A DNA stretch of 64,000 nucleotides from assembly GCA_035084275.1 (NCBI GenBank), contig CM068769.1, positions 6,696,001 through 6,760,000 of the forward strand, read 5' to 3'. A program made the position numbers and the translations under genes. Origin of the DNA: Hydrolagus colliei (lineage: Eukaryota). The notes beneath the pieces are model-generated. The model was not told the origin of the DNA, did no database searches, and worked only from the letters and a program-made list of their open reading frames with translations. This document shows, piece after piece, positions 14,926 through 60,764 of this stretch. Position 1 is the first letter of the stretch; each line of letters starts with the position of its first letter.

Positions 14926-15049
14926 TGAGCGAGCGTTTCCGGTGCGTGTCACGTGACTGGCTTTGAGGCGCCAGACGCCAGCGTCACTAATGTCGTTGTT
15001 ATTATATTATTATTCAATGTGAAGCCTCTGTGACCTCAGAGACTTTCGG

Positions 15050-15388: not shown

Positions 15389-15399
15389 GTGAGTCTGTC

Positions 15400-29569: not shown

Positions 29570-29761
29570 CAGATGGCTTTTAGATTTTTACATTTCTCTA
29601 CGAGTTTCCGAAAAGCTGGAACCGATCTCTCTGTGAAGGAATTCCCACTGTATGTATATGGATAATCAGAGCTCAGATTGATGTTCTCCAGTGATGGCAA
29701 GTGGCAGAGTGTTGAGCAGAGATTCTCAGCGCAGGCATCAGAGAGCTGGTTTTTTCCCAGA
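29570..29761 (-). CDS. NLR LRR exon
   Basis: 192 nt, phase 2-2, canonical AG/GT. Encodes (S)LGKNQLSDACAENLCSTLCHLPSLENINLSSDYPYTYSGNSFTERSVPAFRKLVEKCKNLKAI, i.e. ribonuclease-inhibitor-type LRRs. Confidence 0.9.
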
Positions 29762-30679
29762 CTGTGTGGGTAAGAAATAAGATACAATAAGTATCGGGTA
29801 ACATGGGTTTCATATCAACAACAAAACTGAAGATTTTATAGAAATTCAACACATAATTTGTAATACGAACATCAATTCATAAAGACAACAGCAAGCATTT
29901 ATTACATGCACATTTCTTCAAAACTTTAAAGTCAAATCTATTGCAGCACGATATATGAACGTGTCAAAAAATACTGTTGTGAAACGCTATCGTACAATGA
30001 ACCTTATCATGGTTGATCTGTACCAAATATCATGAGGTTCTGCTCAGCAAACACCAGTTTGTAAGGCTCTCTTTCGACTGCCAAAGCAACATTGCTTTGT
30101 TGTCGCAGAATTTCATTCTCACAACATTATCAACATTCAGGAGCCACAAATAGACATGAAAACATTGAAATGTGGAAAGGGAACTGGACTTGAATGTATC
30201 CATTTTTTTACAATTCGAGAGAACAGAAATGGATGCAGGACTGTTTCAACTCTGGCATGTAGAAAACACATGTAACTAATTATTGTCAAGGCAGGGCACG
30301 GTGGTTGCACTTTAAAAGCAACTCCGTAACGACTCAAGAGCTAATTAAGACTTAAGAGCATACACTTCGCTCAGACTTGAAGCAAAACGAACACAGAGGC
30401 AGAGCCTGAGACCAAGCCACTGGATGGGGGAAAGTGAAGCTCAGCAAAGTCAAAAAGAAAGTTTTTCAGCAGTGTCCTCAAGATGGGAATGGTTGGCTGC
30501 TTACGCCACTGTGAAGCATCCTGCATTTCTGCTGGTAGTAATTTGAGAGTGAGCAAAACTGTCAAAGCTATCTCCTCGTTGATTTGTCGATGCAGTAAGT
30601 TTGGTAACAATAGAACTGATTTCCTCAAGGCTCAATGCTGTTGCCGCTGCTGTTTAACGCCAACACTGACAAGCAAAAT

Positions 30680-32000
30680 TATACTTGTATAACGCCATTC
30701 ACAAGGGGGGCACCGCAAGGCGCTGGACAATCCCTGTTTCAGAACCGACCTGACGATAGGGGGTTTAGGAAAGGTGAGATTAGGAGTTTCCGATTCGACT
30801 ATCAAAGAGCGAAGTCTTGAGGCAAGACTTGAAGCACACAAGGTAGGGGTGAGGTGAAATGACTGTGGGATTGAGTTCCAGAGATTCGAGGCAGATTGTG
30901 TAATTGGTCGCCAGCCAATGGTCGGGCATTTGGGTCGGGGGACATGGAGCATGCCAGAGCCTGCTGAGTGGAGGTGGTGGGCAGGTTGGTAGGGGGTTAG
31001 AAAATCACGGATCTTCTAGCAGACCACGTTGGGGGCGAGCATTTGGAGGACTTTACATGTGAGGAACAGTGTCTTGAATTGAAGCCTCTGGACGATGGGC
31101 CGCCAATCGAGTCAGGCGAGGATGGGGAAGATGGGATCATGGAGGTTGAAACGGAACAGTAAACCGACTGCAGCGTTCTGGATCATCTGAAACCTATGTA
31201 GGAGGAATTGGGTAGGCCGACGAGCAAGGCATTTGCAAAATTGAGCTGGGATGTAATGAAGACATGAATGAGGTTTTCAGCGGTTTTCGGCTTGAGGTAT
31301 TGGCGGAGTAGGTCAATGTTTCGGAGATTAGAAAAGGCAGAGCGAGGCATTGCCTGCATGTTGAGGAGGAAGACAGTTGAGGATCCAACATGACAACGAG
31401 GTTCGTTACTGGCTTGTTGCGATTGAGTGAGCAACCGTGGAAGATGATCAGGATGGAGCCTGATATGTGAAGGCACGAAGCAATCAATAGACCAACATAA
31501 ATGACGATTGTCGGACTTGTGTAGATTCACTTTCTGCACTTTACAATATATTTTGTAAGAACAACATCCTGCATTTTCTAGCGCCCTCCAAGCCGGGTGG
31601 CATCTCAGAGTGATCCACAACGGTGGAGCCAGAGGACTAGGCAGGAGGAAAGGAAAGGTAAGCGTGATCAACGAGCCAAGTCTTCAGGCACGACCTGATA
31701 ATGGTAGGGAGTCGAAGGGGTTGAGGTTCGGATTTCCACAGTTTCGCGAAATAGTGGCTGAAGGTGTGGCCAGTGATGGTGGATTCGTCGACAAGGAAGA
31801 GGTATGACTCAGTAGAACAGAGGCATCGGGAACTCTTTCTTGTCCCGAAACCTGGTTGTGCCGGGTTCGGACAGTTTTAAAGACAGGTCGGGAATATTGA
31901 GGATGTAGGAACTGTGAGGCAAAAGATGTTGAAGAAGTGAAGTGTATTGGGACGTACTCCCGATATGAAAGGCGCACATAATTGTAGTTTTGTTGTAGTG
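30680..32000. mobile_element. Nested L2 LINE fragments in NLR intron
   Basis: L2 peptides such as YLKPKTAENLIHVFITSQLNFANALLVGLP and ASNLWNSIPQSFHL... Confidence 0.8.
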
Positions 32001-32521
32001 GATAATGTGCTTTATCAAACTGATTATTATGTTGAATCTTCACACGTTATCTCTGCGTTAACATCCAATCAGAAAGATTCAGTAAGATTCTTGTAACTCA
32101 GTGATTCGAGTACTTGCCTTGCAAGTGAGAGACCTGCGTCCGTTTCCCAATCGGGCAAATCCTGAATCATTTATTCACTCAACCCACAATCTTTTTTGGG
32201 ACATGGCTGTGCACCGTTTGCTGCTATGCCTAACCCGCAAAATTCACTTTACAGTCGATTCTGTGAAGCGCTTTTGAGATATTTAGTGTATTGAAAATGG
32301 CTCAAAGTATCAAACACACTAAAGGCTCGTTTAGCTGGCACCCAACCATCCGGAATGCTCAACCCAACCGGTATATGCCAAAACAATTCACCATTCCAGC
32401 AAAATTGAGCCATCTGGGACACTCGCAAATATGCTCACTTTGTGCATGCATGCAATGCGTGTGCATCTTCACTCATTAAACCTATCAAATGTCGGAATTT
32501 TTATTTTACTGATCATTTTAC

Positions 32522-32568
32522 CCACTGTGTCCAGTCTGTATCCATCCGATAATCTGTTATTATTTAGT
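32522..32568 (-). CDS. Candidate 47-nt LRR micro-exon of the NLR
   Basis: ATAG| a CTA AAT AAT AAC AGA TTA TCG GAT GGA... = (R)LNNNRLSDGYRLDTV, then |GTAAAA. Phase 2 to 1, so it needs a phase 1-2 partner exon that was not confidently found. Confidence 0.5.
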
Positions 32569-34080: not shown

Positions 34081-34389
34081 AAATGTATCCACATTCAATT
34101 TCATACTTACTCCAGTGTCTGTATTGTACAATTGTTCATATTGTTACCCAATATCGCACAAAGTTGGTTCACTCCTGCATCTCGCAGCGTGTTGTTCTTC
34201 AGCCTAATTGAAAATAATGAGTGCAATGAGTGTAGATAATTCTAAAGATAAATAACATTAATGAACGAAAATAAATTTCATTGCCTGTGAACTTAAAAAG
34301 TGTTGTCCTTGCTAAATTTCAATGCAAAATAAGTAAGTATCTGATCTGATATCTGGTATCTGCGATCAGATGAAATTATCAAATGTAGA

Positions 34390-35368: not shown

Positions 35369-37079
35369 CTTAACTGTTGGCATTTGTGTAGTATGGGTGC
35401 CAGTCGCTGGATCCCTTCCTCTTGTACAGAGCAGTTATTCAGGTTGAGTTCCTCCACATGCTCACATGGTCCCAGCACAGTCGCCAGCATAGTGCAGTCC
35501 ACAGGACTGAGCGGCAAACTCACAAAATCCACTTTCTTCATTGATTTGAACACATCCCTCATCAATTCTGTCTTACTGGATTCAAACAGAAGGTACAGAG
35601 CGTTCAACAATCTTGTTTTGTTTCCTGGAGTTTTTATACTTGCTTTAACTTCTTCCTTCAGCCAATCCATAACTGTCCTGATCGCATCTTGAGGAAGTTC
35701 ACCAATAACCTCTGTCAAATATTGAGTTGAATATTCAGAGGAAAGGCCAATTAAAAATCGGAAAAATATATCAAATCGACCATCCCTGTATTCTTGTGCT
35801 TCCCTCAGTATCCCTGTCAGGTTTTTTGCATCTGAACTTTTGAGGATCGCAAATGCGGCCAAAAACTCCTGAACCGTGATGTGAATGAACGTGTGAACAT
35901 TGTGTTCAGTCGCTTCATCTTTCACCAGGATTTGCATCATAAAAACGGAGGTGAAGTGAGATGGTTTCAGTTTCACACGCGTAAAATCGTCATCATAAAA
36001 TACAACTCTCTTTCTGCGGATTCCCACATGAGCCATCCCACCCAACTTCACTAAAAGATCACGATTCTCTACAATGTCACCGCCAGATCTTTGTAGAAGC
36101 CCTGATATGTAGTTTGAGTACAGCTGTGTGATGGTGCCTGGCAGCTTTCTCTCTGTATTATTTTGGTTGATGAGAGGAGCCAGTGTTGAGCAGAGGATGG
36201 AACAGTAGAATGGGTTGTAGCACATGGTGAACAGGACATCGTTGGTTTTCACATATTCATAAGCTTCTTCAGCGGTTTCACTCTTTCCAAAATATTTATT
36301 GAAATAATCCTTTATTTCTTCGGAAAAGAAACCTAAGATTTCTGCCCAGAGATTGGTCTGCTCCATACTGAGTGACCTCAGATCAGTTGGTCGGCTGGTG
36401 AGCAACACTGAACAGCCTTTGAGCAGCTTCCCCTGCACTAGACATCGTACAATGTCAGACACCGCACCTCGACTCTCAGGTTGTAAGCATTCGGTGCGTG
36501 TAGTGCTCACCTCATCACTGAAGTTAATATTCCCGGTAAATTCATCTAACCCATCAAGTGTAAACAAGATGGTCTCTGGCTGTTTCCACAGATTGGCAAG
36601 ATGGCCATTAAAATATGAATATTTATGCAGCAACATCTCATTCAGGCTGGTATGTGTTTCAGTGTTTTGAATGTCTCGAAATTTAAAATGAAAAACAAAG
36701 TGGAACTGTGGATACAGCTTTCCTTGTGCCCAGTCATAAACTACCTTCTGCACCAGAGTAGTTTTCCCGACACCAGGAATCCCAATAACAACCGCAGTTC
36801 CTGATGTACTGCGTCGTCCAAAACTGCTTCCGAATAATTGATCGTATCGAATTCTTTCCAGTTCTGAATTCATGTTTTTCTTTTGTAAGTTTTCGTGTTC
36901 TCTGCCCCGTTTCAGTAATTCATGCTGCACATGTTTTTGCTCCCGAGCAGATGAGATTACCAACTCTGTGTATTGGACATCGATTGAACCATCTCCTTTG
37001 TTCTCTCCTTGTTTATACTTGTCTATGTGAAGCTTCTTATGTTTCTTGCAAAGGTCATCTTTGTGGCGCTTTTGAATGT
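35369..37079 (-). CDS. NLR large exon: FISNA-like linker, NACHT NTPase, winged-helix/HD2 and first LRRs
   Basis: 1711-nt open exon, CTGCAG| phase 1 to phase 2 |GTACTG. Starts (D)IQKRHKDDL...YTELVISSAREQKHVQHELLKRGREH. Walker A GIPGVGKT, Walker B ILFTLDGLDE, SVLLTSRP, FIHITVQEFLAA; ends LEELNLNNCSVQEEGIQRLAPILHKCQQL. Confidence 0.96.
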
Positions 37080-40021: not shown

Positions 40022-40087
40022 CTGCCAGATTGTCCGGTATTTGGGAACTCATTCCTTTTCCAGTTGCATCATTTAACAAACCAGAAC
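40022..40087 (-). CDS. NLR exon C2 (66-nt linker of second N-terminal module)
   Basis: TCTCAACAG| phase 1-1 |GTATGT. Encodes (G)SGLLNDATGKGMSSQIPDNLA and joins the NACHT exon in frame. Confidence 0.85.
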
Positions 40088-40195
40088 CTGTTGAGATACG
40101 TTCTTGTTATTTGGATCAAAACAGAATTTACCGCAGTTTAATTTTTCTACAAATATCCATAGAAAATATTTTCAACAATATGAGATGAAGTGTAC

Positions 40196-40367
40196 CTTTA
40201 TCCACAATTTCTCTCAGTATTTTGCTCAGTTTTGGCTTGGATTCCTGTATCTCCGAAAATATTTCCCACATGGTTCTTAATGACCCATCTCCTCCAATGA
40301 ACATCAGATTGAAAAGATATTTAGAGGCGTCAGATTGCTGACCCTTTATAGCTAAATCTCTCACTTT
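40196..40367 (-). CDS. NLR exon B2 (C-terminal half of second CARD-like domain)
   Basis: TTTTCAG| phase 0-1 |GTACAC. Encodes KVRDLAIKGQQSDASKYLFNLMFIGGDGSLRTMWEIFSEIQESKPKLSKILREIVDK. Confidence 0.9.
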
Positions 40368-40944
40368 CTGAAAACATTAATAAAAAGAGAATAGAGGTAA
40401 AACAGTTTCGGTGTTATTGATCAAGTGAGCAAATCCTAAACAACACGGAAAAAACTGCAGATGGCGGTCAGGTAGCATCTTAGTTTAGTTAATTTTCCAC
40501 TCTCCATATCTGCTGCTTGGTAATTTCCAACAACTTCTGTTTTTTATGAGTGAGTAAATCATGGTTGATACTAATGAGCCGATATTTCATGTGAGTCCAT
40601 ATATGCTCATGTAACATTTCAGGACTTCTAAAATATAAGACTCCTTGAATTCAGTGTCAATTTGGAACAGTTTTATGTAACATAAGGCCATGTGGGGCAT
40701 GAAGATGAGGTCCACGATCTTGAGTTTTATTCTCTGGGTGATGGGGAGCCAATGTAGTCGAATGAGAATGGTGGAGATGGGATCAAGAAGCATAGTGGTT
40801 GAGATTGGATTGCAGATCTGCTATCTGTGGAAGAAGGAGTTGGGAAGGCCGAACAGCATGACGTAGTACACAATGAGATGAAAGAATGAGAATATCTTTT
40901 CAGTAGAGATGCAACAGTGAGTGGTATAGAGCAGGTACATGGAG

Positions 40945-41250
40945 TCCTGTAGCGCAGTGGTTTGAGCACTCGCCTTACAAGCGTGAGATCTGGTTTCGAA
41001 TCCAAGCAGATCAGGGAAAAAGCTTGGGCACGTTTCGCTACTCCACGTGTTTAATAATAATCTCTCCATAAATACAAACAACAATAAAATTGTTCATTTC
41101 AATCCAGGGATGTTTGTGGGACACTGCTTTGCGCAATAGGCTGCCGCATTTTGCCCGGAGTATACACTTTTTAGCATATTCTGTGAAGCACTTTGAGACA
41201 TCTAGAAGATGTGAAAAGCGATAGATGAAACGCAAGGATTATTATTATTA
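40945..41250 (+). mobile_element. tRNA-derived SINE
   Basis: GGAGTCCTGTAGCGCAGTGG...GGTTTCGAATCC head, body and (TTA)n tail. Confidence 0.85.
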
Positions 41251-42773
41251 CATGTGTCTATAGGTAATTAAAATTAATTAAATTTGCAATGCAAATAGCT
41301 GTCACTTTTTGAGATAAGTAGAACGTGCTTAAAGTTTAGAATGTATGTGTTTAATAACAGTAGAAGGTGGTTGCATTGGAAAAGTATCCAATAAACATAA
41401 TGATTAGATATGGACATGTCTTTCAGTTTAGGTAAGATTATACAAAGCTGTATATCATAACATGTCCTTTGTGGGGTAATTGCAGAATGAGAAAACAGGA
41501 AGTTTAGTTATGTGCTAGAGATTCTGTTGGAAAAGCCAGAACAAAAAACCTATCTGAAAGACAGAACGGAAGAGTAACCTTGCAGGAGAAGGCAAGAACG
41601 CCAGGAGCTGGAGGCGGCAATGAAGCCGGGAGCTTGACATCTTTACCACAGCATCTACTCAGATTCAGAATTTCAAGTAATATCGTTTTGATTCTGTTCT
41701 ATGCTAAATGCTTTGGTTTGTATAAATAAAAAATATGACACGATATTGGATTGTCTGATTATTAAATCCAACCTAGGGATCAGAAATCGCAACACACTGA
41801 GACAAATCTGCTGGAAATATGTATTACAAGATGTCTGGAATAACAGCGGCTTCTCTTCTCATAAACCTGTCAAATGCTGCCGCAGAGAATCGTTCAAGTG
41901 GTGGTTTGTTTAATGTATGTTAAATAGGTATGGTTGAAAGCCAATTAAAGAGGGATCCGATAAACTGGATGGAAGTTTATCCGAGACAACGAGAAAATCG
42001 GATGAAACGCCCATTCCGAATCATTTTTATACTTACCTATTTTAAATACACCGGATGAGTTGGACAAACTATGATTAATCCAGAGAGAGTAGTTCACTGC
42101 TTGGCACTTACATGCTGACACTATCTTGAGTGCCTCCAGTGGCTCCAGGGAGGAGTTAAATTGTGGTTGGTTGAGAGTAATTCCCAAACGGTTTCGGGCT
42201 GTTTATCAGTGAGTGGGGCAGGGAATTGGGGACGAAACAAGGGAGGGAATGGGAGTCAGATAGGCTTGTCATTAGCACGTGGCATGTGGGGCGTGGGAAT
42301 AGGATTGACTAGTTGGAAGCTCATTCAAAAGACCTATAATCCACAATTTGGAATAAGCCATCTGATGCGCTGTAGGATTATACTGTGTGAATGGCTGATG
42401 GACTGCTCTAATTCAAAAGGGTCTACTCTGATACGCATTCAACTCAATTATTTCCACATCAACAAAAATCCCATTCAACATCCTTGTTCTCTCCTTCAAA
42501 TCTCCGTGACATCTCTAATCATACAGTCCCAGCCATTCCTTTCAGAATTAATTTAGTTCATGTGCCTTATCCAACATCAATGGTCTGACTTTCATATTTT
42601 TTGCCAATACTCTCTGGATCACCATCCAGACTCTGCTTCTCATACACTCTTTCACCTCATTCAAGATCATTGTTGACAGTTTGGGTAACATCTATAATTA
42701 TTTTTGCATTCGTTGAAAACAGCCTATGTTTAAATTGTTATTGAGCTCACAACATTTAGCACATTGAACCAAC

Positions 42774-42931
42774 CTGAAGTTCATCTATACCCATTTCCTG
42801 TTTTCTGTATAAATACAAGGCCACATCTGGAACAAATTCCTGAATCGCTTCTTCCAGTCTCTGCCGGTGGAACTCGGTGATTCTGAGCAACTCATGTTCA
42901 TTGTAACCGTCCAACATGTTTTTAATTCCAT
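42774..42931 (-). CDS. NLR exon A2 (N-terminal half of second CARD-like domain)
   Basis: GTTTTAG| phase 1-0 |GTTGGT. Encodes (D)GIKNMLDGYNEHELLRITEFHRQRLEEAIQEFVPDVALYLYRKQEMGIDELQ. Confidence 0.88.
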
Positions 42932-43009
42932 CTAAAACATGTCAATCGAGATTTAGATTATTATATTAGAATAATACAATAAAAGTAACAACACAATTAT
43001 TGGAGAGAA

Positions 43010-43660
43010 CATGGAGCAGCGAGGCGAATGGAGGTTTGCCTTTTGGAAGCAGTTGATGAGGAGAGAGACAGAGTGATGGGGCAGTTAGGGTGACGGTTCT
43101 GGGTCCACAAACATTGGGAGGAGGGCCGAGCTGGTGCAGGGGAAGCTAATGGGGGGTGGGGTCCAGGAATGGGAGGGACTAAGAAGGGCAGTGGGAGAGA
43201 AGGAGAGTGTTGAAACAGTAGAAGGTTGTAGGTGGGAGCAAGAACCTATTCGGATGGAACGTCTCAGGTTGAGGCAGCAGCCACATTCAGGCCTCAGAGC
43301 CCTGGAATATGTCATCAGCGCGACAGTATCAGCCCTGGGGCACCTGGAGACAGCACAGCTCTCCAGGAGCCCCAGGGCTGCTCGTGCTAAATTTCTGAGT
43401 GAAAATCTATTTTATTCCAGATTGTTGACTATCGCAGTCAGTGTTTCGGATGCGAGCTGTGTTCGGGATCAGGGAGGGTATAGGTAAGGCGCTGAAGTGG
43501 TGTAAACCGATGGCGCAGTCGAAGAGGAGGGACGTGAGACCAGAAGCAGGGTAGGGAGAGGGCGAAGCATAGGGATTACAGGATGGAATTCTAAATGTTG
43601 GGGCAGAGTGGCTGAACGCTCACCCGCTGATGGTGGGCCGGATGATTCTGGAATAAAAAA
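43010..43660 (-). mobile_element. Decayed L2 LINE (endonuclease/linker region)
   Basis: Purine-rich L2-like sequence with YTTSAPYLYPP-type EN remnant on the - strand. Confidence 0.55.
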
Positions 43661-44389
43661 CAAAGCCTCATTTATGCGTTGTGTTATGCACCAGTTTCCT
43701 TTCTCATCTCGGGAGGTTTGATGCCCTACCTTTCCCCTTTATGGAAATGTATGTAATCCAAACCATCTCCTCTTTCAAGGCTTCCCATTAGTCAGGAGAT
43801 GTTTTATCTTCCAATCTTTCTATCCAGTGCATCCTATCTAGTTTTCTTTTCAAAACCACTGAACTCAGCCTCTTCCAGTTGAATATCTTCACCTTTGATT
43901 GTGATTGATTGTTCACTGGCCCTTTCCACAGTGAACAGTGAACAACGGTAAACAGATGATTTCGTGATTACCGTTGTCTAGATGCTCTGCAGCTGAAACC
44001 TACTCCACTTACCATCAGAGTTAGATCCTGCACTGCTTGCTTCCTCATTGTTTGAGAAATATACTGGTTATTCTGCATACATTTCAGGAATTGATTACGC
44101 TCCATGGAATTTACACTGTATTTTGCAAGGGTATATCAGGAAAATTGATTTCTCCATTCAGATTATAAAATAAGTTTTAAAGTTTTTCTGGCATCTGCTT
44201 GCAGATTTGTTCCTCTATCTCCTTTCCCACAATATGGTGGTCTATGGAATGCAATGATTTTCTGCTGCATATACATTATTATTATTATTTCTTTCGCTGA
44301 AATTCAGATCCTGAATAATCAAAATATTATACAGAGTTCTTAGCAACATAAATCTATAAAACAATATGTAATATTTATAGGTCACTTAC

Positions 44390-44455
44390 CTTCTCTATTT
44401 TTCGGTGTCTTTCCACTCGCATTATTTCTGACTGCATCTTTCGATATATCAGAAC
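44390..44455 (-). CDS. NLR exon C1 (66-nt linker of first module)
   Basis: TCTCAACAG| phase 1-1 |GTAAGT. Encodes (G)SDISKDAVRNNASGKTPKNRE. Same length and acceptor context as C2. Confidence 0.85.
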
Positions 44456-45242
44456 CTGTTGAGATATGTTCTTTTGATTTGGATTCAAGCAGAGGATCGG
44501 CGAAGATGTTTCTATTTGGAAACTACAATGTTGATGTTAACTCTGTGACCACCTCCTTCTGTATTATTTACTTTGATGTGCCACATCTCCAATTTTATAC
44601 AATTCACCATTACCACAATGCTTTGTGAGAACATATTTTTGTTTCAGTCTTTAAACGCTTGATGGTTAATCATAAAAAGTACAATGATATATATCATCAG
44701 TGATTTTCTTATTTTTAAAAGTTTATATTGTTTTATTATATTGATAGTAATATATTAATATTTTGAGAAGTATTGACGAATATTAATTTATTCAATAAAC
44801 AGTGCGTCAAAGAGGAAGATTAGCATATGGAGCATGACCCCGTCAGATAACTGCAGTTGTAGTCTTTCAGCAAAACGGTGATAACAAAATAGGAATAATT
44901 TCCCATGTTAATAATACTAGTTTATAACGGACAAAATTATGGTTAAAGATTGTACACAGATAATTGTTTGTGCACTTTACTTCGTATATGTTAGCAATCA
45001 AAAATCGTATAAAGCGTCTTAAAAAGTGTATGAAAAACGCATAAAAAGTTGTTTATGTCACATACTATCTTGATTTTCTGGTAGTTTCATGTTGATAGCT
45101 TCATCAGAATCATCATTTAATGAATCTGAATCTGCACATATATGTTTCTTTGAAGTTGCAATTAAACAGAAGGAAACATAAAATTGTTTTAAAAAGTACA
45201 TTATAAAATCAGGATTAATGACACTAAACTAAGGATACATAC

Positions 45243-45411
45243 CTTCATCCAAAATTTCTCTCATTATGTTGCTGAGTTTCAGCCTGATATCCTTTGTCTC
45301 AGCAAATATGTCCCACAATGTTCTCACTTTACCTGGCCCAGCATGCAACACCAGAGTGAATATTAGGTGGGCGGCATCAAACTGTTGAGAGTTCGAAAAC
45401 GCTTTCACTTT
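45243..45411 (-). CDS. NLR exon B1 (C-terminal half of first CARD-like domain)
   Basis: TTTTCAG| phase 0-1 |GTATGT. Encodes KVKAFSNSQQFDAAHLIFTLVLHAGPGKVRTLWDIFAETKDIRLKLSNIMREILDE; paralogous to B2. Confidence 0.88.
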
Positions 45412-45839
45412 CTGAAAATAATAAAATAATAATTACAAATTATCCAACTAAAATGGCTACATAATTGTCGATAAAGTCAGCTCATCTTATTTGATTTTCA
45501 TCAATATAATTTCTTCCTTGGTCCAGATTTACTTTCAATACCATTTCTAAGCGTCGAAGATGCGAGAAATTCTACAGCGCTAGTGTGAGGACTGTTTTCT
45601 AATAGTTCTGTTAAGAATTACAGTACACATATTTCAATAATTAGGATTAATTTCAAACAAGTTATCAAATACAGTTCATGAGTAACAATATGCATCGGAA
45701 GACGAGATGAATCGATATTATCTTTCAATTTTTACATTGGAATACAAGGATAACAAACCAACACTTCAGAGCATGCTAGTTGTTAGAGAATACTTTGCTA
45801 GTATGGTAATACTGAGGGATGCAGAGCACTGGTACGGGG

Positions 45840-46700
45840 CTCCAACAACAACAACAACACAACTACACTTGTATAGCGCACTTCACGACATGAAGACATC
45901 TTAAAGTGTTGGACAGTCACTGCTTCAGACCCGTGGTGCCAAAATTGCGGGAAGGAAGTGGGGAATAGGAGTTGCCGATGGGTCCATCAAAGCGGAGAGT
46001 CTTGAGGCGAGACTTGAGGGTGGAATGGGAGGGGGCAAGATGGAGGGACTCCGAGTTCTAGTGGTTGAAGACAGAGTGGCTAAAGGCTCTCCCGCCAGTA
46101 GTGGGGCGGATGGGACGGGGGACGTGGAGCAGGCCAGAGAGTCTGATAAGCGGAGAAGGTGGGCAGGTTGTTAAGGAGATAGGAAGTCATGGATGTAGCG
46201 TAGAGTGAGGTGGTAGAGGGCTTTAAATAGGAGGACCATGAAGTTGAATTCGATCCTCTGGATGATGGAGAGCTGATGAGATTGGAGCGCTTGAGGAATT
46301 GGGACGACGAGTTCTACAATGTCTGCAGCCTGTGGAGGGTGGAATTGGGAAGGCCGACAAGCAGGGCATTTGCATAGTCGAGCCGGGGTTCACATGAAGG
46401 TGTGGATGAGGATTTCAGCGGCTATGGGGTTGAAGTAGTGGCAGAATCGGTACTTTTGCGGAGATGGGGAAAGGTAGAGCGAGTCATTGCTTGGATGTGG
46501 AGGAGGAAAGACAGTTGAGGTTCAAACAAGTCACCTAGGTTCGAAGAGAGTTCTTTGTCAAAAAAGACACTCAAGTTCCACAAAGTGTCCTGAAGATTGA
46601 GTGAGATCAATGCAGGTGCTGCAGTTTGACCTGAGGTGAGCAGTTCCAAATGGAAGCCAAGCAAAAGAGTCTCTGAATGCAGACAATTAACACAATTCAA
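45840..46700 (-). mobile_element. L2 LINE 3' fragment
   Basis: (CAA)n-CTTGTATAGCGCACTTCAC tail at 45845 and L2 ORF2 remnants. Confidence 0.8.
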
Positions 46701-48347
46701 CCATCATCCAGGTTCTGCTGTGCGACATGCAATTAATCAGAAAAACAGTGATGACACTGTCAGATGTAGAAATAGAATGTTCGAGTGAGGAAGTACCTAC
46801 ATTCAGGTGAATGTTAACCCCATTTAGATGGATGATGGCACCAATTTGAGCGGTAAATTGTGCGTAAAGATCGAGTCCTGAGGAGCGCAGCAGATTGAAA
46901 GTAAATTGTGCGCTGGCAGTAAGCGAAGCCATTGGAAGAGACAAAGTGAATACATTGGGATAAGTAAGAGTTAAACAAACATGGAATACAAACGTGCAGC
47001 AGGGAGTAGAAATCTTAGAGAAGATACAGTCGATTCTGTTCAGAAGTCAACATGTGTTTGCGAGGTTACATCACAGTCTTACCAAATATCATTTTACAGA
47101 CTATAGATCACAGGTAAACGGGGATTACTGACTGTGATCTCGATTTATATTTTGGGATTCAATGTGTACCAAATCAAAGAGTATTAGCTAACTCAAGTCA
47201 TTTGGGCGATTTAAATGTAATAATGTGTCACAGTAATAAATTGCAGAAATATTTTCCAAAACTTGCGGGAAATTCCACAATTTTTTTCTGGCAAGCTGCG
47301 TTTTGTCACTTGATTGTTGACGGCTAAATATGAAAACAACAACATGCATTAGAATATTACAAAAAAACAGTTAACACAAACTGGGTGGCCAATGCTGGTG
47401 GGTGGGCGAGGGGGCCGAAAATACATGCAAACGTTCGAATTGTTATTTTCAATTTTCACTGCGACCAGTATTCTGAATATAATGCTCGAGACGTTCACCA
47501 CCTACTGCCTCTTGGGCCACATCACTGCCCCGTACTAACTTTGAAATATACAACGCATTCCACGCCGGACAGCGTCGCAGAGCGCTTCACTGCTCACAGA
47601 TACACAGAGATAGAAACGCACACACACAGAGATAAAGCACATACACTGAAAGCGAAAAAACAGACAAAGACACGCAAAGTCACACAGAAACATAAACAAA
47701 CACATTAAGACAGGGAGAGACATACACACAGACACAAACCCCTGGAGACACAATCACAAACACACACATAGATAGTTAATAAGTGATTGTACTTTCATGC
47801 TGAAAATATGAAAAAATAATCCATGTTAAAATTCATTAACGTTCTTCCCAGCCCCACAAAGGATTAAGTGTCTGTGAAGCCTTGAAACTGTAGTTTGCTG
47901 GCCAAAAGTTTCACTCAGTGTGGATTGGCCAAATTTATGAGTCAATAGACCTCCCCACATTGTCCAGAACTCAGTTTTGCTCTACTTATTTAAGATCGAT
48001 CTCAAATTCTACGCTTTTGATAGCGTTGTTTTGTCACTTTTCTCCAAATGCACTCGCTGGGTGCTCATTCTCTAATCAGTAATAATAGCTAGTACAGCAA
48101 GTTCATCGCAACGTCCTCCATCATGGACGATGACATATAAATGTTAATTGTTATTGTATTGTAATTCCCGAGTTGCAAGCAGATCTCCGTTTCTGGGGTA
48201 GTTTGGAACACCTCGGTATTTTGTTGCCACGCTTCAAAATAAATTATGCATCAATAATTATATATTAGTCAATCAACTATATAACACATCAACAAACCAA
48301 TATTTAAGCTGGCACAAACGTCATGAAATTAATTACATTGAACCCAC

Positions 48348-48514
48348 CTCAAAATCGTATAAGTTAATTTCGCGTCTTCTGAGTAACTCTTTGACCACGT
48401 CCTGAACACACCTCACAATAGCTTCTTCCAATGGCTGCCGGTGCTTCTCGGTGACATTGTGCAGCTCTTGGTCATTGTAACCTTGCAGCTTCCTTATAAT
48501 CGCATCACTCACAT
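48348..48514 (-). CDS. NLR exon A1 (N-terminal half of first CARD-like domain)
   Basis: CATTTGTAG| phase 1-0 |GTGGGT. Encodes (D)VSDAIIRKLQGYNDQELHNVTEKHRQPLEEAIVRCVQDVVKELLRRREINLYDFE; paralogous to A2. Confidence 0.88.
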
Positions 48515-49439
48515 CTACAAATGACAATCAAAATGTAGGTTATCTCTTGGAATATCAAAGTATTAAAACAACAGTTTGTACTGCAGCAGATTATTTTGAT
48601 TAGCTGAGGGTCTGATTCAAGGAGAAACCTGTCACCAATCAGCTGGGATAGTGCTCAATTAGATCCCAGTTACTTCCATTCCCAATGATGTCCGTAGTTG
48701 GTCGATTTACATCCAATAAGTGTAGGTTTGAACCCTCGCTGAATGTTTCCAGGAACTCATTGCGCATTACTGATTGTAGCACTGTTCTTTATGAAATCTA
48801 CGAATTAATTGTCACCATTTTCAAACCTGGACACACACCTCCAACTATTTAGCGATGCTTCCACCAGTTCGAGGTGTGAAGCTTCTGAAGCTGCATTGCT
48901 ATTTTGAGAAAGATTTAATGATCAGTGATAAAGCAGTATATGATGCAATCATACCGTAAGTTGCAAAATTGTCAATATGGGATGCAAGTCAGGGATAAGT
49001 TTATTGCTGTTGTTAAGGTTAGTGAAACTACATTTTCACTCAAAAATCTCCCAAGTTTCCGGCAGTGATGTATGCCAAGTGGATATGAAACCTTTCAGAT
49101 ACAGGAGAGAGCAGAGCTGGTTTATCACAATCACCCACGTTTCAGAGGTTTAATCAAAAAGAGGAACCATATTTCGACTTTAAAGGAGAAATATTTTATT
49201 TGTTGCTTGCAAGCTTTCCAACCAAAGCTCGCAAGCAACAGTAACTTCAACACATGGAACCAGTTCTCTCAAACTACATGACTTGGAATGCTCTGTCTAA
49301 CCAAGATAATTCTGACTGCCCCCGAGCCCTTTTTTATTGTCTCAACAATTTATATTTATATAGCACCACTCAAGGAGGCTAGTTATCTTCACATCGAGTC
49401 ATGTACTCCTAATTGAAATTTAGCATTGTCCATTGCATT

Positions 49440-49519
49440 AAAATGAATAGATATAAACATGTGTTTATATCTATTCATATATATAAACATGCGTTTATAT
49501 CTATTCATATATATATATC

Positions 49520-49572
<53 letters not shown>
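49440..49572. repeat. (TA)n microsatellite with degenerate AT-rich flank
   Basis: Visible dinucleotide run. Confidence 0.9.
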
Positions 49573-49574
<2 letters not shown>

Positions 49575-50044
49575 ATAAATATACGTCACGAAATGCAAGA
49601 TGCTGCCTATCTTCGACAAATGGTTTTAGATGCGCTATTCTCCGGTTTTCCCCTTAATAGATTGTCTAATGCAGGACAGTTCGTTTCACTGCTGGCCGAC
49701 ACCCTGCCTAATAATGAATGGATTATTGTTGGCACTTTCTATATTCCCCAAATCTTCAGATGTAGGATGATTCAGGTGGTGTACCCTCGTTAAATCTGTA
49801 TAATTTATCTAGCAACTCATTTTTCTCTAAATTTAAAGTTTGACCCTGTCACAGTTGTGGATGACAAATTGTCTCTATCAGTTTCCTTTCTGAAAAGGCA
49901 AATTGTATGTTCAGCTTCTTAGTTAAATTATTCCCACCATTATCTTTGTATCAATGGCAAGATTATCCTATTAATTTTCCATCCTTCCAATCCATATTAT
50001 GACCATTCTTTAACTGATAACATGCTTGTAGAACACTTGACTAT

Positions 50045-50670
50045 AACAACAACAACATTGTATTTATAGAGCATCCTTCACATCGGAAGGACAACCCATG
50101 GCGCCGAACATTTGTGACGGGACACGAGCAAGGAGGAATGGTGGGTGGGGCGGGAGGGAATCTGACTAGGGGAAGGGAAAGGAGATTAGGAGACGGGGAA
50201 GAGTTAGGAGGGTAGCAAAAGGCACTGTCAAAGAGGAAGTTCTCAAGATCGGCCTTGAAAGCGGAAAGGAAGGAAGTGAGGCAAAGGGATGGAGTTCCAC
50301 AGTGGGAGCGGAGTGGCTGAAAGGCCGGTCACCGATGGTTGGACGGTTAGGGCGGTGTAAGCGGAGCAGGCGTGAGTCTGCTGAAAGGAGGGTGCGGGCA
50401 GGCTGATTTCCCTTTAAAAGGGAAATGGGTGGGTGCAAGACCGTGATTGGCCTTGAAGGTGAGGACCAGGATCTTGAAATGGATCCTCTGGGTAACGGGG
50501 AGCCACTGGAGACAGGCGAGGGTGGGGGTGATGTGGTCCCGAAGCCTGCTATGGGAGAGTACACGAGCTGCAGATTTATGAATGATCTGCAGCCAATGAA
50601 GGGAGGAGCTGGGATGGCCGACGAGGAGAGAGTTCCCATAGTCGAGCTTAAATGCATTGATTGCGTGGAT
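50045..50670 (-). mobile_element. L2 LINE 3' fragment
   Basis: ORF 50347..50673 IHAINAFKLDYGNSLLVGHPSSSLHWLQIIHKSAARVLSHSRLRDHITPTLACLQWLPVTQRIHFKILVLTFKA is L2 ORF2. (CAA)n tail at 50045. Confidence 0.88.
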
Positions 50671-53133
50671 CATTACATATTTGCCTTTCAGTTATCTATT
50701 TTGTAAACTTCAGATGTTTTTTTTGTCTCAGTTTCGTCTTCACCTCATTATTTATTCTTGGCATATTTTCAGTTAAGTTCCATTATTTCTTCATGGAACA
50801 ATTATCCGGCATCTTTCCCTGAACATGCTTAAACTTGTTCCATAGATACACAAGATCTTGTTTGTCATTTCTGCTGTGACATCTACCTCGGCTAGTATAA
50901 TCGTCACGACATTAAAGTTATCTTATTTTTTGAAAGAGTGACCCTCCTTCACGTCTTATTGATCTACTGTATCACTATTATCATTTTTAAATTAATAATA
51001 TTATATTTAGAAGTTTTAAACCAGACGTAGAATTGTGTGATTTGTATTTGAATCAACTTGTGGCAAGTTTCCAGCTGATCGTCAAGCTAGAACCATCTAG
51101 TTGGATTTTGGCTTGTAGCACAGACAAGAGCTGGTCTGTAAATTCTACTATTTTTCGAGATAAACTGTGTTTGAAGTAGTGAAAATTTAAGAGATAACTG
51201 AAGAGAATTTGTGAGAGAGAAAGAGTTGTTTCAGTGAGAAATAACAAAATATATATTGAGAATTAGTAGATTTTTGATTCCATGATGGAATGTGAGGAGA
51301 ATGCAGTTTGGGGCTTTGTGTATGAAAGTGGTGATACTATCGATTATTCTGGAGACAATTTATTGTTGATAATCATAATAATCAATGCATTTCGTATAGT
51401 GCTTGTTCACGCACTCGAGATGCCTCCAAGTGCTTCACAGATTGCGCGGTAGTACGGAGTGACTTTGTGTTTTGTGGGTGAAACATTACGCAATTACGCA
51501 CTGCAGCATCTGAATCACAGCAGTGTATTGAATGATCAAATTTTTATATAATGTACATTTATTGTATTTTTTAAGCAAATTAATATTTTATTGATTTCCA
51601 TTGACGTATCTATTTATTTTTTGTCAACTTCTTACTTAATTATTCAGAATTGTTGTTGTGATTGTGGTTCACCTAATCTTATTATTTATTATTTCATGTA
51701 TTTTTTGATGTATGTCTTTAATTATATTTTTGTTTATTAGATAATGACTTTGTTCAAGTGATTATTGGCTGATCCGTTTGTTCGCTTGTTTACTTTTCCA
51801 AGGATAATTTCCAGTGGAACATGACTCGCCAATCGACTAACAACAGGGTTCCTGCTTACTGTTTAGTAAAGAGAGTCATGTGTCCTAAAAAAACTTTCTC
51901 CAGGTTTCGTCCAGCCTGGGACTCAAACGCAGGACCTCTCGCTTGTGAGATGGGAACTCTCACCATAAAATTGGAGGATTCCACATTATTTGTTAGATGG
52001 CGGCATCGAGTGGTGGTTCAGGAGAATGGCAGCGTATGGTGTGAGTTGATTTAGTAAACTTGCAATTTAGTTTTCAGTTAGACGTGTAACCATTGAATGC
52101 GGGATACGTCGTATAACATTAATATTAATATTCCGCTCACATCATCACTCTCCTCCACAGCCACGCCTTCTATACTGACTGATTCGCCGGAGCTACTCTC
52201 CGACTCCCACGCCCTCCCATCCCGTGTCTCTCTCCCATGAATCTCCCCTATGCCCCTTCCCCCACCCCCTCGTAGCTCTCCTCTCCCCATAGCTCTCGTC
52301 TACCCGCATAGCTACCACACTTCCAGTACCACACCCCCACCTTGCCACCCTCCATATGCAGCTCAATCTCGCAAAGAATTTCAAACAATGACTCTGTTGC
52401 ACCATTGAAGACTCAAATTTGCTCTCCGGCCGAAAGGACGGAAAATAAACTCAAATTGTTGTATTTGTTCTTGTTGTCAAAGGCGCAATATATCACGAAA
52501 TATTCTGCTGTGAAGTAACTTAACTGTGTATACCTTGGGGAACGTGACAGCAAGATAACACTGTTCAAGTGCGGATTGGATCAAGATACAGTTGTGAATG
52601 GAAGCAACCACAAGAACACACTTTACGTCTTGCAGCTCCCTTCACTATGGAAAGTAGTCCAGGGGCGCTGGAACATCAGGGAGTTGAGAGCTGAGATACA
52701 AGTTGGCTGTTCAGGTGGGGTGGAGGGCTGGGGTGGAGCGGATGGAATTGTGACTAACTCCAAGATCAAGGGGGCGAATTACAATAAGAAAATTACATTT
52801 CGCTGGCGAATTGCACACTGGGCAGGGGTCCCAGTTACTGCAAAGTTAGTATTTCGCACCAGAGTTTAGGCATAGGGAAGTTTGAATGGCAGTGGGAGTT
52901 GGAGGTTGATTAGAAGCACAGTCGATATAGAGAGTCTGGAGATGGGTCTTGACGGAAGTGGAAGAGAGAGGGGGCAAGACAAACGAACACCAATATAGAA
53001 CTCCAGGGTGTGGGGGCGGAGAATCAGCCAACCGTCAATTAGTTACTTAGTTTAATGGATAATTAGTCGAATCTCCGCGAGGCCTCAAGGCCTAGATTCC
53101 GCACACTTTCCAACGGGTGTACAAAATGAAATC

Positions 53134-53488
53134 AGTTTCTGTTGGAGCCCGGCAGTGTAGTCAACCACTGTGGTGAGACTGAAGGCACAGTGATACACTG
53201 CGCTGTCAGATACCAGCAGCTCAGAGATGGATAAACTGGTGATAGAACTAGATTCCTGCAGCTCAGCAGCGAAACGGTTTCCAAATCCTGTTCGTTTCAC
53301 TAGATGTCCATCACCAGAATATATCTCCAAACTATAAACTCTGGGTGTTTGTCTGGGTAACGTCTGTACCACAAGAGATAGTAAATGTTGGCAGTAGTGG
53401 TGTAGGTACATATAACATTGGCAGCTTTTCCTGCTTTCTTATCCATCGTCGGCAGCTTTCTGACTGACAGAATCGGCGTCACAGAGTT
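53134..53488 (-). pseudogene. TCR alpha/delta-type V pseudogene V1 with intact 23-RSS
   Basis: V exon 53173..53488: ELCDADSVSQ...NVICTYTTT..YYLLWYRRYPDKHPEFIVWR...TGFGNRFAAELQESSSITSLSISELLVSDSAVYHCAFS. A +1 and a +2 frameshift flank an in-frame TAA. RSS CACAGTG (53166-53172), 23 bp, ACAGAAACT (53134-53142). Leader not found. Confidence 0.92.
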
Positions 53489-54680
53489 CTGGAAGAAACC
53501 AGGAAAAGCACCGTGAAATATTATACAACAAATTCACAGTTGATTTGTCAGCAGTGGAACAAAAGTTTGCAGTACGTTTTACACAGCGTGTTATAGCATC
53601 GTTGAGACGCCTTAATGCGCTGTCCAGAATATGCAATCAAGTGATAAACTGTAGATTTTAACGCCAGAACATGTCAGCTAGTTTTGCACAGCGGTGCCTC
53701 ACAAAGTCTTGTGGGTTGAGTTACTTAAACTATTATTGAAACATACATAAGGCATTATTACCATCGGAAAAGATATCTGCCTGTCTGGAAAACAAAGGTT
53801 AAAATCGAGAAATAAATATTATTTTTTTATTATTAATGTGCAGGTTCAACCACGTGATAAAACCCCTAAATTCCTATATTCAAGTTCCTGGTCCTCAGAT
53901 ATAAAGCCCTCCACAACCTAGCCCCACCATATGTGACTCCTAACCCTTTACTAACCTGACCTCCCCCTCACTCTGCCCAGCAGTCTCTGGTCTGCTCCAT
54001 GTACGCCTATCCTTCCGCATTACCATTGACGGGCGATCCTTAACCACTCTGCCCCCAACATTTGGATCTCCATCCCGCAGTCCTTCTACCTCGCCGCGTT
54101 CACCGGCCTCTTTCATGTCTCGTCTCCAGATTCTCCTCTTTAATTGACCCATCGGTAACTCCTAATCCATTCTCCGCACCCACTGTCCTCAGCTTGGATC
54201 TGAAGCAGTAACCCCTGACGTGAAAGGCACTATACAAATGTAATTTTGTTGTTGCTATTGTGTATTGGACAGTTTCTTTACTGCGGATTAGTTAGGAGTT
54301 TCGTTTTGGAACAAAGTTGAAATAACTTTGCGAGCTGGAGGTGAAGATTTGCACATGCCTCGCAAACAGTACCAAAATTATTGTCCTTTACACGATTAGT
54401 CTACAGATAACATAATTTAAATATACATTGTATTTGCAAACTGACTTAAATGAAGTGGACATCTGGACCTGTAGCGCCTAACTCGTTCACTAAGTGCTGT
54501 CTGCATTTATTGTAAAGGATAATGATGTGAGAGTTTAGCTGACAAGCTGATGGGAGGGGAATGTGGTTTCCTGCGAGTCTGGCTGCTGAAGTATCTGCTC
54601 CCCGCAGGGCCTCAAGGCCTGACCAAGATTCCGCACAAGTTTCAAACAGACAGATCGTCCCCTATGATTAATATGAGGAC

Positions 54681-55507
54681 AGTTTTTGTACGAGCCCTGC
54701 AGTGTAGTCAACCACATTGGTGCGACTAAAGGCACAGTAATACACTGCGCTGTCAGAAACCAGCAGCTCAGAGATGGATAATCTTGTGGAAGACTAGATT
54801 TCTGTAGCTGAGCAGAGAAACGGTTTCCAAATCCTGTGCCTTTGACTTGATAATTATTCTGATAAGATCTCCAGACTACAAACTCTGGGTGTTTGTCTGG
54901 GTAATATCTATACCAGAAGAGTAAGTAATAGCTATTAGTCGTGAGGTATTTGCAAACCAAATCGACAGTATCTCCTTCTTTCTTAAACACCGGGGCAGCA
55001 TTCTGACTGACAGAATCGGCGTCACAGAGCTCTGTAATAAACGATGGAAAGCATAGCTAAACATTCATGGAAACATAGAATCTTAAGGCACAAAAGGAAG
55101 CCATTCTGCCCATCGCGTCTGTGTCGGCTCTTTGAGCAGAGCAATTCAATCTCACTCCTCAGCTCTCTCTCCCCATAACTGTGCAAAAATGTCGTCCACA
55201 ATTAAACATCTACCTCTCTTTTAAAATATACTTTTGCATCGGCTTCCCCCACCGTTTCAGGCAATGCATACCAGATGCCAACAACACGATGAATGAAAAA
55301 ACGTTTCTTCAACTCCCCTCTACTTATTTTAGAAAATAGTAGTTCATCTCAATTGCGAACTGATTGCTCTGTCCATTCAGCTACAGGCTCCCTCCAACAA
55401 TTGTTGTTGAAATGGAGCTGACAAGCAGCAGCGACACTGAATTAGCTCAACACGACCTCACCTGCCGTAAAGGTTCCCAGCACTAGACAGACAGCAAACA
55501 GCCTCAT
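54681..55507 (-). pseudogene. TCR alpha/delta-type V pseudogene V2 (paralog of V1)
   Basis: Leader 55462..55507 MRLFAVCLVLGTFTA|GTGAGG. V exon 54720..55031 with a 1-nt deletion in FR3. Heptamer mutated to CAATGTG (54713-54719), 23-bp spacer, nonamer ACAAAAACT. CR1 fragment in the leader intron (~55072-55330). Confidence 0.92.
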
Positions 55508-55577: not shown

Positions 55578-56391
55578 TTGGCAGATCCCAGAGTCCTCGG
55601 ACACCTCATTGACATCTCACACTTGCTTCAACAACAGCAACGGATTGATTTTACCTCATTGACATCTCAGTTGCTTTTACATTGTGCAATACAAAATTAC
55701 TGTCTGTGTTATTGCGGCGGGGGTGGGTGGGGTCGTGGGCCGGTGCGAGGTGGGGAGCAGGGAATCCTCCCACGCAGCTCTCGGTAACCTTACAATCAAA
55801 CCTGACAAATATACATTCCATTAACTTAACCGTATATATTCCGTGAAGCGCTTTGGAACGTCGATATACTGTGAAAAGCGCTATCTTGCATTTATAATCA
55901 AATGCAATTATTATTCATATTATTCTAATCCAATCAATGATGGGCATGAACATGGGATTAGTTTACACACACACATAAGGATAAAGCGTTTTTAGTTTCA
56001 CTCCATGTAATGTTTTGTATTAATTCAAACACTTCATCCATTTTATAGCTCAACGGCGGTTAGCACTTTTATTTAGATTTCTAAAAGTTGTAAACTTACA
56101 TTGTTAATCCGTTCGAATTTCTTCATTGATCCCCAGTGTTGATTTGCGCATTATTTATTTTCATAAACAGCAGCTTTAGAATAACAGTTATTTAGTTTGT
56201 TATAGTGAGGTTAAATAATTCCCTACATTAAGCCATGCGACTTGCTTTATTGTTTTATTGCCCTTGTTTTATTGCATGTGGTTGGGAATTAATCACGTGG
56301 ATCTTCTGAGAGACACAGCAGCAAAGTAAAATAGGTCAACTGACAGGAATGACATCTGTGCCGTGATTAAACCCATTAACTCCTCTTTGAA

Positions 56392-56430
56392 GGTTTATGT
56401 ACGGTTGTGTAGCCTGAAGGTAACACTGTG
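56392..56430 (-). other. 23-RSS of V3
   Basis: CACAGTG (56424-56430), 23-bp spacer, ACATAAACC (56392-56400). Confidence 0.92.
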
Positions 56431-56879
56431 CGAGTGATCCCACAATAGTATGTGGCTGAATCAGATAGAGCCGCAGCCAGCACAGTTACAGTGGATGTCT
56501 TGCTGTTCGTGTCCAAACTAGTGGTGAAAAGACCTTCAGCAAATTTAGCTCTGAAAGTGTCACCATCATAATCATGTCTCAGTGTGTACAGAGGAGCCTG
56601 GCCTGGATACTGACGGTACCAGTACATCACAACACCGGTGAAACCAACAGAGTAGGTCCATCTCAGTATCACAGTCTGGCCTTCAGTGACAGACACTTCC
56701 CTCTGTGATGGTTCAACATTATCTCCATTCGCTGTCGCTGTAGACAGAAAGAACAAGTTATTCACTGTAACGCACATACCAGAGCTAAATCTCCAAACGG
56801 CCTTCAGAGCGAGAGTAAATTACTTACATAAAAGGACCAATAAGATTAAAATGATCAAAGCAATGTGTTTACTCTTCAT
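56431..56879 (-). CDS. TCR alpha/delta-type V segment V3: open frame but first-Cys replaced by Trp
   Basis: Leader 56828..56879 MKSKHIALIILILLVLL|GTAAGT, 90-nt intron. V exon 56431..56737 STANGDNVEPSQREVSVTEGQTVILRWTYSVGFTGVVMYWYRQYPGQAPLY...DSATYYCGIT, with no stops. Confidence 0.9.
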
Positions 56880-59914: not shown

Positions 59915-60764
59915 CGATTTTGTACGGCTGGAACACTGATTTGTGCGTCTGTGGGGCTCAGCGCACAGTAATACACAGCAGAGTCTGTCACTGTCACTAA
60001 GGATATATTCATTGGCACGGTTCGCCGCGCTTTATCCAAATTCGTTGAGAATCTTTTTTGTGCAAATTCTGCAGGATATTCCTTGTTGTTCCTGGTGTAT
60101 ACGTAAAGGATGTATTCTGGAACTGTGTTGGGATAGTGACGGTACCAGTATATATGCATCGCTGCTGCTTGTAACTGTGTAATTACACAGCAGATAGGCA
60201 TTTTCCCCTTCATTCACTGTCACAGCAGGTTGGAGCTGTGTCACAGAGTCTCCTCCACAAAGCCCTGGAAACGCAAAAAAATACATCATCATTTAATACA
60301 CGAGCAACAATTCCAATCGTCCGCTTGTGTTTCACACGGCGCTATGTCGAGTCGTTGATACGTCTCCAAATAATTCACAGAATAAAATGAGCACAAAACG
60401 ATTTAGTGTGTAATATTTCGCCCTGTTCTGCCAGGGAATCGAACCGTAGTCATCTCGACTGTGAAGCCAGTGCTATCAACAATGAAATAATGAACACTCC
60501 AAATCCTGAAGCTCTTTTTGTATTATTATATAACGTATGCGATAAAACATAGGCATTGGATAATACTTTCGGTAACAAATACAGATAGAATGCTAACCTA
60601 ACAAGGCAACGATGACTACTGCAACATGGATATGCATTGTCATATATATTTAACGACACCATTTGCAGAAAGAACGTTGTAGTGTATGTGAAGAATGTCG
60701 TCTGGGAGGCAGTTAAGATACCGTGAGGAAGGCTGAACAGTAAATGGCATACAGCAGTTGCCAT
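59915..60764 (-). pseudogene. TCR alpha/delta-type V pseudogene V4
   Basis: Probable leader 60722..60764 (MATAVCHLLFSLPH, phase 1). V exon 59954..60264 GLCGGDSVTQLQPAVTVNEGENAYLLCNYTVTSSSDAYI/YWYRHYPNTVPEYIL...DSAVYYCALS, with one frameshift in a (TA) run before Trp41. RSS CACAGAC, 23 bp, ACAAAATCG. Confidence 0.9.

Follow-up and report, generated by a model that had tools for sequence, protein, structure and literature searches.

The DNA analysed here, referred to below as the window, is a stretch of 64,000 nucleotides from Hydrolagus colliei (assembly GCA_035084275.1, contig CM068769.1, positions 6,696,001 to 6,760,000 of the forward strand) that contains no runs of N. Its minus strand carries a predicted gene of the NLR family, in which six small exons, arranged as two successive copies of a three-exon cassette (A-B-C), precede a large exon encoding the NACHT core and two exons encoding leucine-rich repeats (LRRs). 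Each cassette is predicted to specify a divergent CARD followed by a linker. We lean modestly towards the reading that both cassettes are joined in a single mRNA, in which case the product would have the layout CARD-CARD-FISNA-like region-NACHT-short LRR.

All six cassette exons were found on the minus strand, at the positions assigned to them previously. Exon A1 (48348-48514; 167 nt, phase 1-0) supplies the first half of CARD 1, preceded by a predicted N-terminal helix, and was delineated by its open frame, an AG acceptor, a GTGGGT donor, and tblastn matches from five proteins of the same family. The second half of CARD 1 is assigned to exon B1 (45243-45411; 169 nt, phase 0-1) on the basis of splice sites and tblastn matches. 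It is followed by exon C1 (44390-44455; 66 nt, phase 1-1), which encodes a linker with a predicted local distance difference test score (pLDDT) below 50 in the structure model, and which ends in the strongest donor site of the gene (AAG|GTAAGT). In the second cassette, the first half of CARD 2 comes from exon A2 (42774-42931; 158 nt, phase 1-0), which shares 68% identity with the only module of the closest homologue, the unnamed UniParc protein P0001. Exon B2 (40196-40367; 172 nt, phase 0-1) completes the predicted domain, and exon C2 (40022-40087; 66 nt, phase 1-1) forms the linker towards the FISNA-like region. The large exon (35369-37079, minus strand; 1711 nt, entry phase 1) encodes the FISNA-like region, NACHT, the winged helix, HD2 and the first LRR. 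Downstream of it lie LRR exon 1 (34111-34203, minus strand; 93 nt, phase 2-2), which is matched by several homologues in tblastn, and the last LRR exon (29566-29761, minus strand), which has a TAA stop at its end; both are also supported by splice sites, and the last one likewise by tblastn.

Each cassette exon has an AG acceptor after a pyrimidine-rich tract and a GT donor, and the phases 1-0, 0-1 and 1-1 are identical in the two cassettes. With lengths of 402 nt (module 1) and 396 nt (module 2), both divisible by three, and an overall phase of 1-1, both modules are frame-neutral. Together the six exons form an open frame of 265 residues that joins the NACHT exon in phase 1. The initial annotation had described these exons as open, canonically spliced and chaining in phase into the NACHT exon, and had pointed out that skipping of one module would leave the frame intact. 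Both statements were verified in the sequence, and because of the 1-1 phase of the cassette all one-CARD and two-CARD isoforms would be in frame. The size given for the nine-exon model (2807 nt, at least 935 residues) had to be corrected: a recount yields 2798 nt including the stop, i.e. 932 residues plus a split first codon, with zero internal stops, and the gap of 9 nt could not be traced.

The identification of the modules as CARDs draws on several kinds of comparison. The Pfam CARD model matches module 1 with E=7.7e-4 (19.9 bits), which is below its gathering cutoff of 23.9, and does not match module 2; it recognizes 10 of 37 family modules, with a best E-value of 5.6e-9. AlphaFold2 models of module 1 (pLDDT 79, from an alignment of three sequences) and of module 2 (pLDDT 88.7 and pTM 0.78, from an alignment of 37 sequences) both consist of a helical bundle and, behind it, a disordered tail, which is the part specified by exon C. 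When the model of module 1 was compared with the PDB by Foldseek, the top 18 structures were all CARDs, including those of ARC, NLRC4, Apaf-1, RIP2, NOD1 (22-24% identity) and caspase-1, and the list for module 2 was led by the CARDs of zebrafish GBP-NLRP1-like, ARC, CARD8 (25% identity), NLRC4 and ICEBERG. Target-normalised template modelling (TM) scores to the CARDs of ARC, NLRC4, Apaf-1, NOD1 and CARD8 range from 0.7 to 0.85. The Foldseek E-values (0.3-1) are not significant by themselves, and for that reason the CARD assignment leans on the consistency of the hit lists together with the Pfam result. A family profile searched against the sequences of solved structures ranks the CARDs of ICEBERG, caspase-1, NLRC4 and RAIDD highest, with E-values of 0.014-0.024 for ICEBERG and caspase-1. 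The profile of 37 sequences was required to surface CARDs among the PDB sequences; with a profile of three sequences the sole match below E 0.1 was a spurious one to a cytochrome repeat. Taking the models and profiles together, we interpret each module as a divergent CARD with a short additional helix at its N terminus. The death-fold assignment made at the outset is thus upheld by the predicted fold of both modules, with the Pfam signal being sub-threshold and confined to module 1.

The two copies share 41.5% protein identity over 130 aligned codons, close to the value of about 45% estimated earlier by hand, and about 65% identity at the DNA level. DNA similarity between the copies is limited to the exons and about 13-38 nt of flanking sequence. 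Since the introns can no longer be aligned and the similarity ends so close to the exons, the duplication is old. Two indels distinguish the copies and both are in frame, the six pairs of splice-site dinucleotides are all intact, and the frame is continuous in both, so that the earlier observation that neither copy has a stop or frameshift stands. The probability that a random stretch of 133 codons of the same composition is open is about 3e-4, and a module drifting neutrally from its sister copy remained free of stops in 0.9-5.7% of simulations in which indels and splice sites were not counted. These values exclude chance as the source of the open frame, and the in-frame indels and intact splice sites would, by inference, push the neutral probability still lower. 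Compared with a hidden Markov model (HMM) of the family built without it, module 1 scores 94.7 bits and retains most consensus residues; module 2 scores 130 bits in the same leave-out comparison. The ratio of nonsynonymous to synonymous substitutions (dN/dS) between the copies is about 0.74, and identities at the three codon positions are nearly flat (0.66, 0.69 and 0.60). Averaged across the whole history of the copies, the dN/dS value would indicate at most weak purifying selection. Of the proposal of an old duplication kept under selection, the age is therefore borne out by the unalignable introns, and the selection receives only moderate backing. The duplication of the cassette is real and old, and the copies are probably constrained.

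The NACHT core points to NLRP3 and away from NOD2. In the large exon Pfam identifies NACHT (5e-34), NOD2_WH and NLRC4_HD2, and the Walker A (GIPGVGKTT) and Walker B (LFTLDGLDEF) motifs are both intact. Among solved structures it is NLRP3 chains that match best (E 6e-51, 177 bits), with an alignment that starts at about NLRP3 residue 135 and spans FISNA; the score for NOD2 (5irm) is just 93 bits. The FISNA model of Pfam finds no match, though the region aligns to NLRP3 from about that residue. The named close homologues are all 'NLRP3-like' or 'NLRP12-like' proteins of sharks, rays and elephant shark, with 42-51% identity. P0001 is closest, with 69% identity in NACHT, and the pattern of identities, which is the only indication, suggests that this protein is of holocephalan origin. 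No protein identical to the gene product was present in the public collection searched. In mammals, NOD2 adjoins CYLD and SNX20. Neither was seen in the window, where the neighbours of the gene are G-protein-coupled receptor (GPCR) genes and V gene segments. Orthology to NOD2 was rejected on the basis of the NACHT scores, the aligned FISNA region and the different neighbourhood, and it follows that the tandem CARD arose independently of NOD2, as the initial annotation had supposed. Judged from the sequence, the likeness to NOD2 is one of convergent architecture, not of orthology.

To place the module in its family, a profile was searched against 1.84 billion representative proteins with a cutoff of E <1e-3. 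The module is carried by 96 representatives, which range from lamprey to amphibians, the majority coming from sharks and rays. Twenty of these were looked up, and they derive from sharks, rays and sawfish, and also from lamprey, bichir, lungfish, caecilian and newt; two are unnamed UniParc entries. A NACHT Walker A motif is found in 41 of the 96 proteins, typically about 110-125 residues past the module, a spacing that the window gene matches, and 35 of these 41 contain a single full module. The motif is missing from 52 representatives. Two to four copies of the module occur in nine of the 96 proteins, and in three of these nine the copies are located ahead of NACHT: P0002 (Mustelus) has three near-identical modules, and P0006 (Hemitrygon) and P0097 (Pristis) have two each. 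The other six proteins with two to four modules have no NACHT. The short relatives P0005 (310 residues), P0009 (342 residues), P0003 and P0004 consist of two to four CARD modules only, and such module-only proteins might act as CARD-only regulators or be fragmentary gene models. Among them, one begins with MGQGSS, which may serve as a myristoylation site, and one is hydrophobic at its ends.

Tree analysis of the modules groups both window modules and the P0001 module in one clade (Shimodaira-Hasegawa-like approximate likelihood ratio test, SH-aLRT, 98). Other tandem sets originate outside this clade, indicating that duplication of the cassette was repeated within the family. The gene for P0006 could be inspected at the genomic level in Hemitrygon akajei (locus L001; GCA_048418815.1, JBLLJJ010000136.1, 17381-39680). 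It contains the A-B-C cassette twice, with the phases of the window gene, from which it follows that the three-exon cassette is common to at least a ray lineage. In the NCBI model of this gene, C1 is joined to A2. The two cassettes of this stingray locus together extend across more than 20 kb, their introns measuring about 9-12 kb. The tandem layout is consequently no peculiarity of this window gene but recurs in two to four copies in other sharks and rays; in the sequences compared, the doubled cassette is a recurrent habit of the family.

NLRP3-like proteins with an N-terminal CARD have already been described in sharks and lamprey (PMC11258412), and an expanded NLRP-related family in sharks was reported with the whale shark genome (PMC8455134). 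Like the window gene, these CARD-bearing proteins have a CARD in place of pyrin, ahead of a FISNA-like region, NACHT, winged helix, HD2 and LRR, and they are named 'NACHT, LRR and PYD domains-containing protein 3-like' by NCBI. In the NACHT, the window gene shares 45-51% identity with the shark and ray members. The window gene differs from them in having two cassettes, where most relatives have one, and in its very short LRR. A search of the literature found no paper describing tandem CARDs in the CARD-bearing NLRP3-like clade. What was known is a widely expanded family of CARD-bearing NLRP3-like proteins; its cassette has been duplicated several times, and the window gene is one of its members. 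For elephant shark, a recent preprint lists 98 NLRs, with zero CARD-containing members and no ASC (2026, bioRxiv 10.64898/2026.07.03.736391). A divergent CARD of the kind predicted here can be missed by domain scans, and our results bear on the recent claims that elephant shark lacks both CARD-containing NLRs and a canonical inflammasome.

Several known systems share part of this architecture. NLRP3 resembles the window gene across FISNA, NACHT, winged helix and HD2, but the window gene lacks a pyrin domain, has CARDs in its place, and has a much shorter LRR. NOD2 likewise has two N-terminal CARDs (in our case predicted) before a NACHT-LRR core, but the window gene has a NACHT of the NLRP3 clade, a FISNA-like region, and CARDs that are nearest to those of caspase-1, ICEBERG and NLRC4. 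The CARDs of NLRC4 and of NLRP1/CARD8 recruit caspase-1 directly. The CARD structures of NLRC4, CARD8 and caspase-1 match the predicted fold of the window modules, and by analogy this suggests that the window gene may act without ASC; however, the NACHT clade differs from that of NLRC4 and NLRP1, and the CARD of NLRP1 is located elsewhere in the protein. RIG-I and MDA5 also obtained tandem CARDs by independent internal duplication and use them as a signalling seed, but on a helicase core instead of a NACHT, and their structural match to the window modules is weak.

The structure of the locus argues for inclusion of both cassettes in one transcript. C1 contains no stop and has the best donor of the gene, so that it behaves as an internal exon that splices onward, and the next phase-compatible acceptor is that of A2. 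Several observations weigh against a two-CARD product, among them the non-significant Foldseek values and the dN/dS ratio reported above. In the module tree, module 1 is on a long branch (1.04, versus 0.23), and the donors of the A exons are weak. The remaining LRR region comprises about 95 residues in two intact exons, and the array looks eroded. In module 1 there is no in-frame ATG before the last quarter. Candidate start exons, defined by an ATG, open codons, one extra base and a GT donor, were sought in 48515-54500 and in the C1-A2 intron, and none in 48515-54500 was convincing (best donor score 1.5). A tblastn search with the first exon of P0001 gave no match in the window, and a comparison of the C1-A2 intron with the region upstream of A1, for a first exon common to both copies, returned only short repeat-like DNA matches. 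A candidate at 43730-43766 (minus strand) in the C1-A2 intron, consisting of MVWITYISIKGK plus one base with a donor AAG|GTAGGG and a good Kozak context, would splice in frame to A2 and produce a single-CARD protein. It was rejected as probably a chance occurrence, since it lies inside a fragment resembling a long interspersed nuclear element (LINE).

These points would fit a working product with one CARD (cassette 2, NACHT and LRR), cassette 1 being a leftover that is skipped, used in a minor isoform or slowly decaying. In its protein entry, P0001 has a 19-residue first exon that leads straight into its only module, which is of the module-2 type; this module is 67-69% identical to module 2 and 38-45% to module 1. 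The single full module in most NACHT-bearing relatives, the absence of a detectable ATG exon upstream of A1, the long branch of module 1, the dN/dS between the copies, and the frame-preserving nature of A1-C1 skipping all agree with such a product. Yet a stop-free frame with in-frame indels and six intact splice sites is improbable under neutral decay of cassette 1, and module 1 scores well against the family HMM, has a confidently predicted CARD fold, and is rated above module 2 by the Pfam CARD model. Moreover, the sole phase-compatible ATG exon in the C1-A2 intron is the LINE-embedded candidate. Overall we regard a product limited to the second CARD as rather doubtful. That A1-B1-C1 instead forms a separate upstream CARD-only gene, similar to a decoy or regulator and outside the NLR, is very unlikely in our judgement: C1 is stop-free and its donor is the strongest in the locus, the C1-A2 gap is just 1.46 kb without a recognisable terminal exon, strand and phase fit A2, and for such a gene, too, the search yielded no start exon. 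The frequency of representatives without a NACHT Walker A motif (52 of 96) and the existence of short multi-module proteins such as P0005 and P0009 would speak for it, but many short database proteins may be gene-model fragments.

Erosion of the LRR array raises a further issue, namely that the whole gene may be losing function. Two minus-strand stretches in the intron separating the intact LRR exons probably represent LRR exons that have decayed. The first, of B type (32484-32567), is open but has lost consensus residues, and was identified by weak tblastn matches and inspection; the second, of A type (32091-32219), has an in-frame stop and is matched at this spot by six homologues (E 1.7-4.9). 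Taken with the intact exons, they fit the A-B-A-B alternation that would be expected if the ancestral array had been longer. A search of the window revealed no LRR exons other than these two remnants and the intact ones, and no third cassette. The loss of these exons, the missing start exon and the lack of an identical protein in the collection searched would be compatible with decay of the whole locus as an NLR pseudogene, the long open frame being a recent survivor. We hold this to be improbable, only a little less so than a separate CARD-only gene, in view of a nine-exon frame of 932 residues without a stop, intact Walker A and B motifs, winged helix and HD2, and the 2-2 phase of the LRR exons, by which their loss keeps the frame.

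Returning to the two-CARD reading, we propose that the gene is a vertebrate NLRP3-like NLR, with FISNA-like region, NACHT and LRR, in which a divergent CARD replaces the pyrin domain. The CARD and its linker would be encoded by a symmetrical A-B-C cassette of overall phase 1-1, which was doubled in tandem long ago with retention of reading frame, splice sites and CARD fold in both copies. By analogy with NLRC4, NLRP1/CARD8 and NOD2, ligand-triggered oligomerisation of NACHT would cluster the N-terminal CARDs. The CARD clusters could in turn nucleate a partner with a CARD of its own, for which a directly recruited caspase-1-type protease is the most plausible candidate. Such direct recruitment is weakly favoured because the nearest CARD sequences are of the caspase-1/ICEBERG/NLRC4 type. 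Two CARDs per protomer might provide a larger nucleation surface, as in the tandem CARDs of RIG-I, or might separate partner binding from regulation. A more far-reaching idea, which we advance tentatively and consider unlikely as a whole, is that in holocephalans, for which a lack of ASC and of CARD-containing NLRs has been reported, this gene and its relatives are cryptic CARD-NLRs that seed caspase-1 directly, the 1-1 cassette giving rise to CARD1-CARD2, CARD1-only and CARD2-only isoforms. If true, such isoforms would differ in signalling strength or partners, amounting to exon-level modular tuning of an inflammasome sensor.

If both CARDs are co-expressed, the locus would represent a second way, independently evolved, of building an NLR with tandem CARDs, in which an NLRP3-type core is combined with a duplicated frame-neutral exon cassette. 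Our comparisons further indicate that the N-terminal domain of many 'NLRP3-like' proteins of cartilaginous fish is a CARD, one that is often missed by standard domain scans. The practical use lies mainly in the annotation of shark and chimaera immune genes and in the selection of candidates for caspase-1 recruitment; the general picture of NLR function is unchanged.

The surroundings of the gene contain other elements. Just upstream of it, three immunoglobulin V-set segments are located on the minus strand (54535-54990, 56376-56777 and 59809-60213). In the segment at 56.4 kb the terminal residues are YYC, and beyond them come the heptamer CACAGTG, a 23-bp spacer and the nonamer ACATAAACC, which make up a 23-bp recombination signal sequence (RSS). 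From these features the segments look like a germline cluster of T-cell-receptor or antibody V genes adjoining an innate receptor gene. On the other side, an intact open reading frame for a rhodopsin-type GPCR of 335 residues (11684-12691, plus strand) has its best matches in Callorhinchus milii 'GPR139-like' and similar proteins (73-76%), with sharks and rays at about 50%, which points to a holocephalan source, and a truncated GPCR paralogue is found on the opposite strand (5856-6296, minus strand). Fragments of a LINE retrotransposon (about 24000-27600, minus strand) are situated between the NLR and the GPCR. The window also has at least three copies of a repeat resembling a short interspersed nuclear element (50166-50657, 30635-31015 and 17227-17733, minus strand), one of them just upstream of A1. 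Finally, low-complexity tracts rich in TG/CA (about 13700-16100) give rise to spurious long open frames on both strands.

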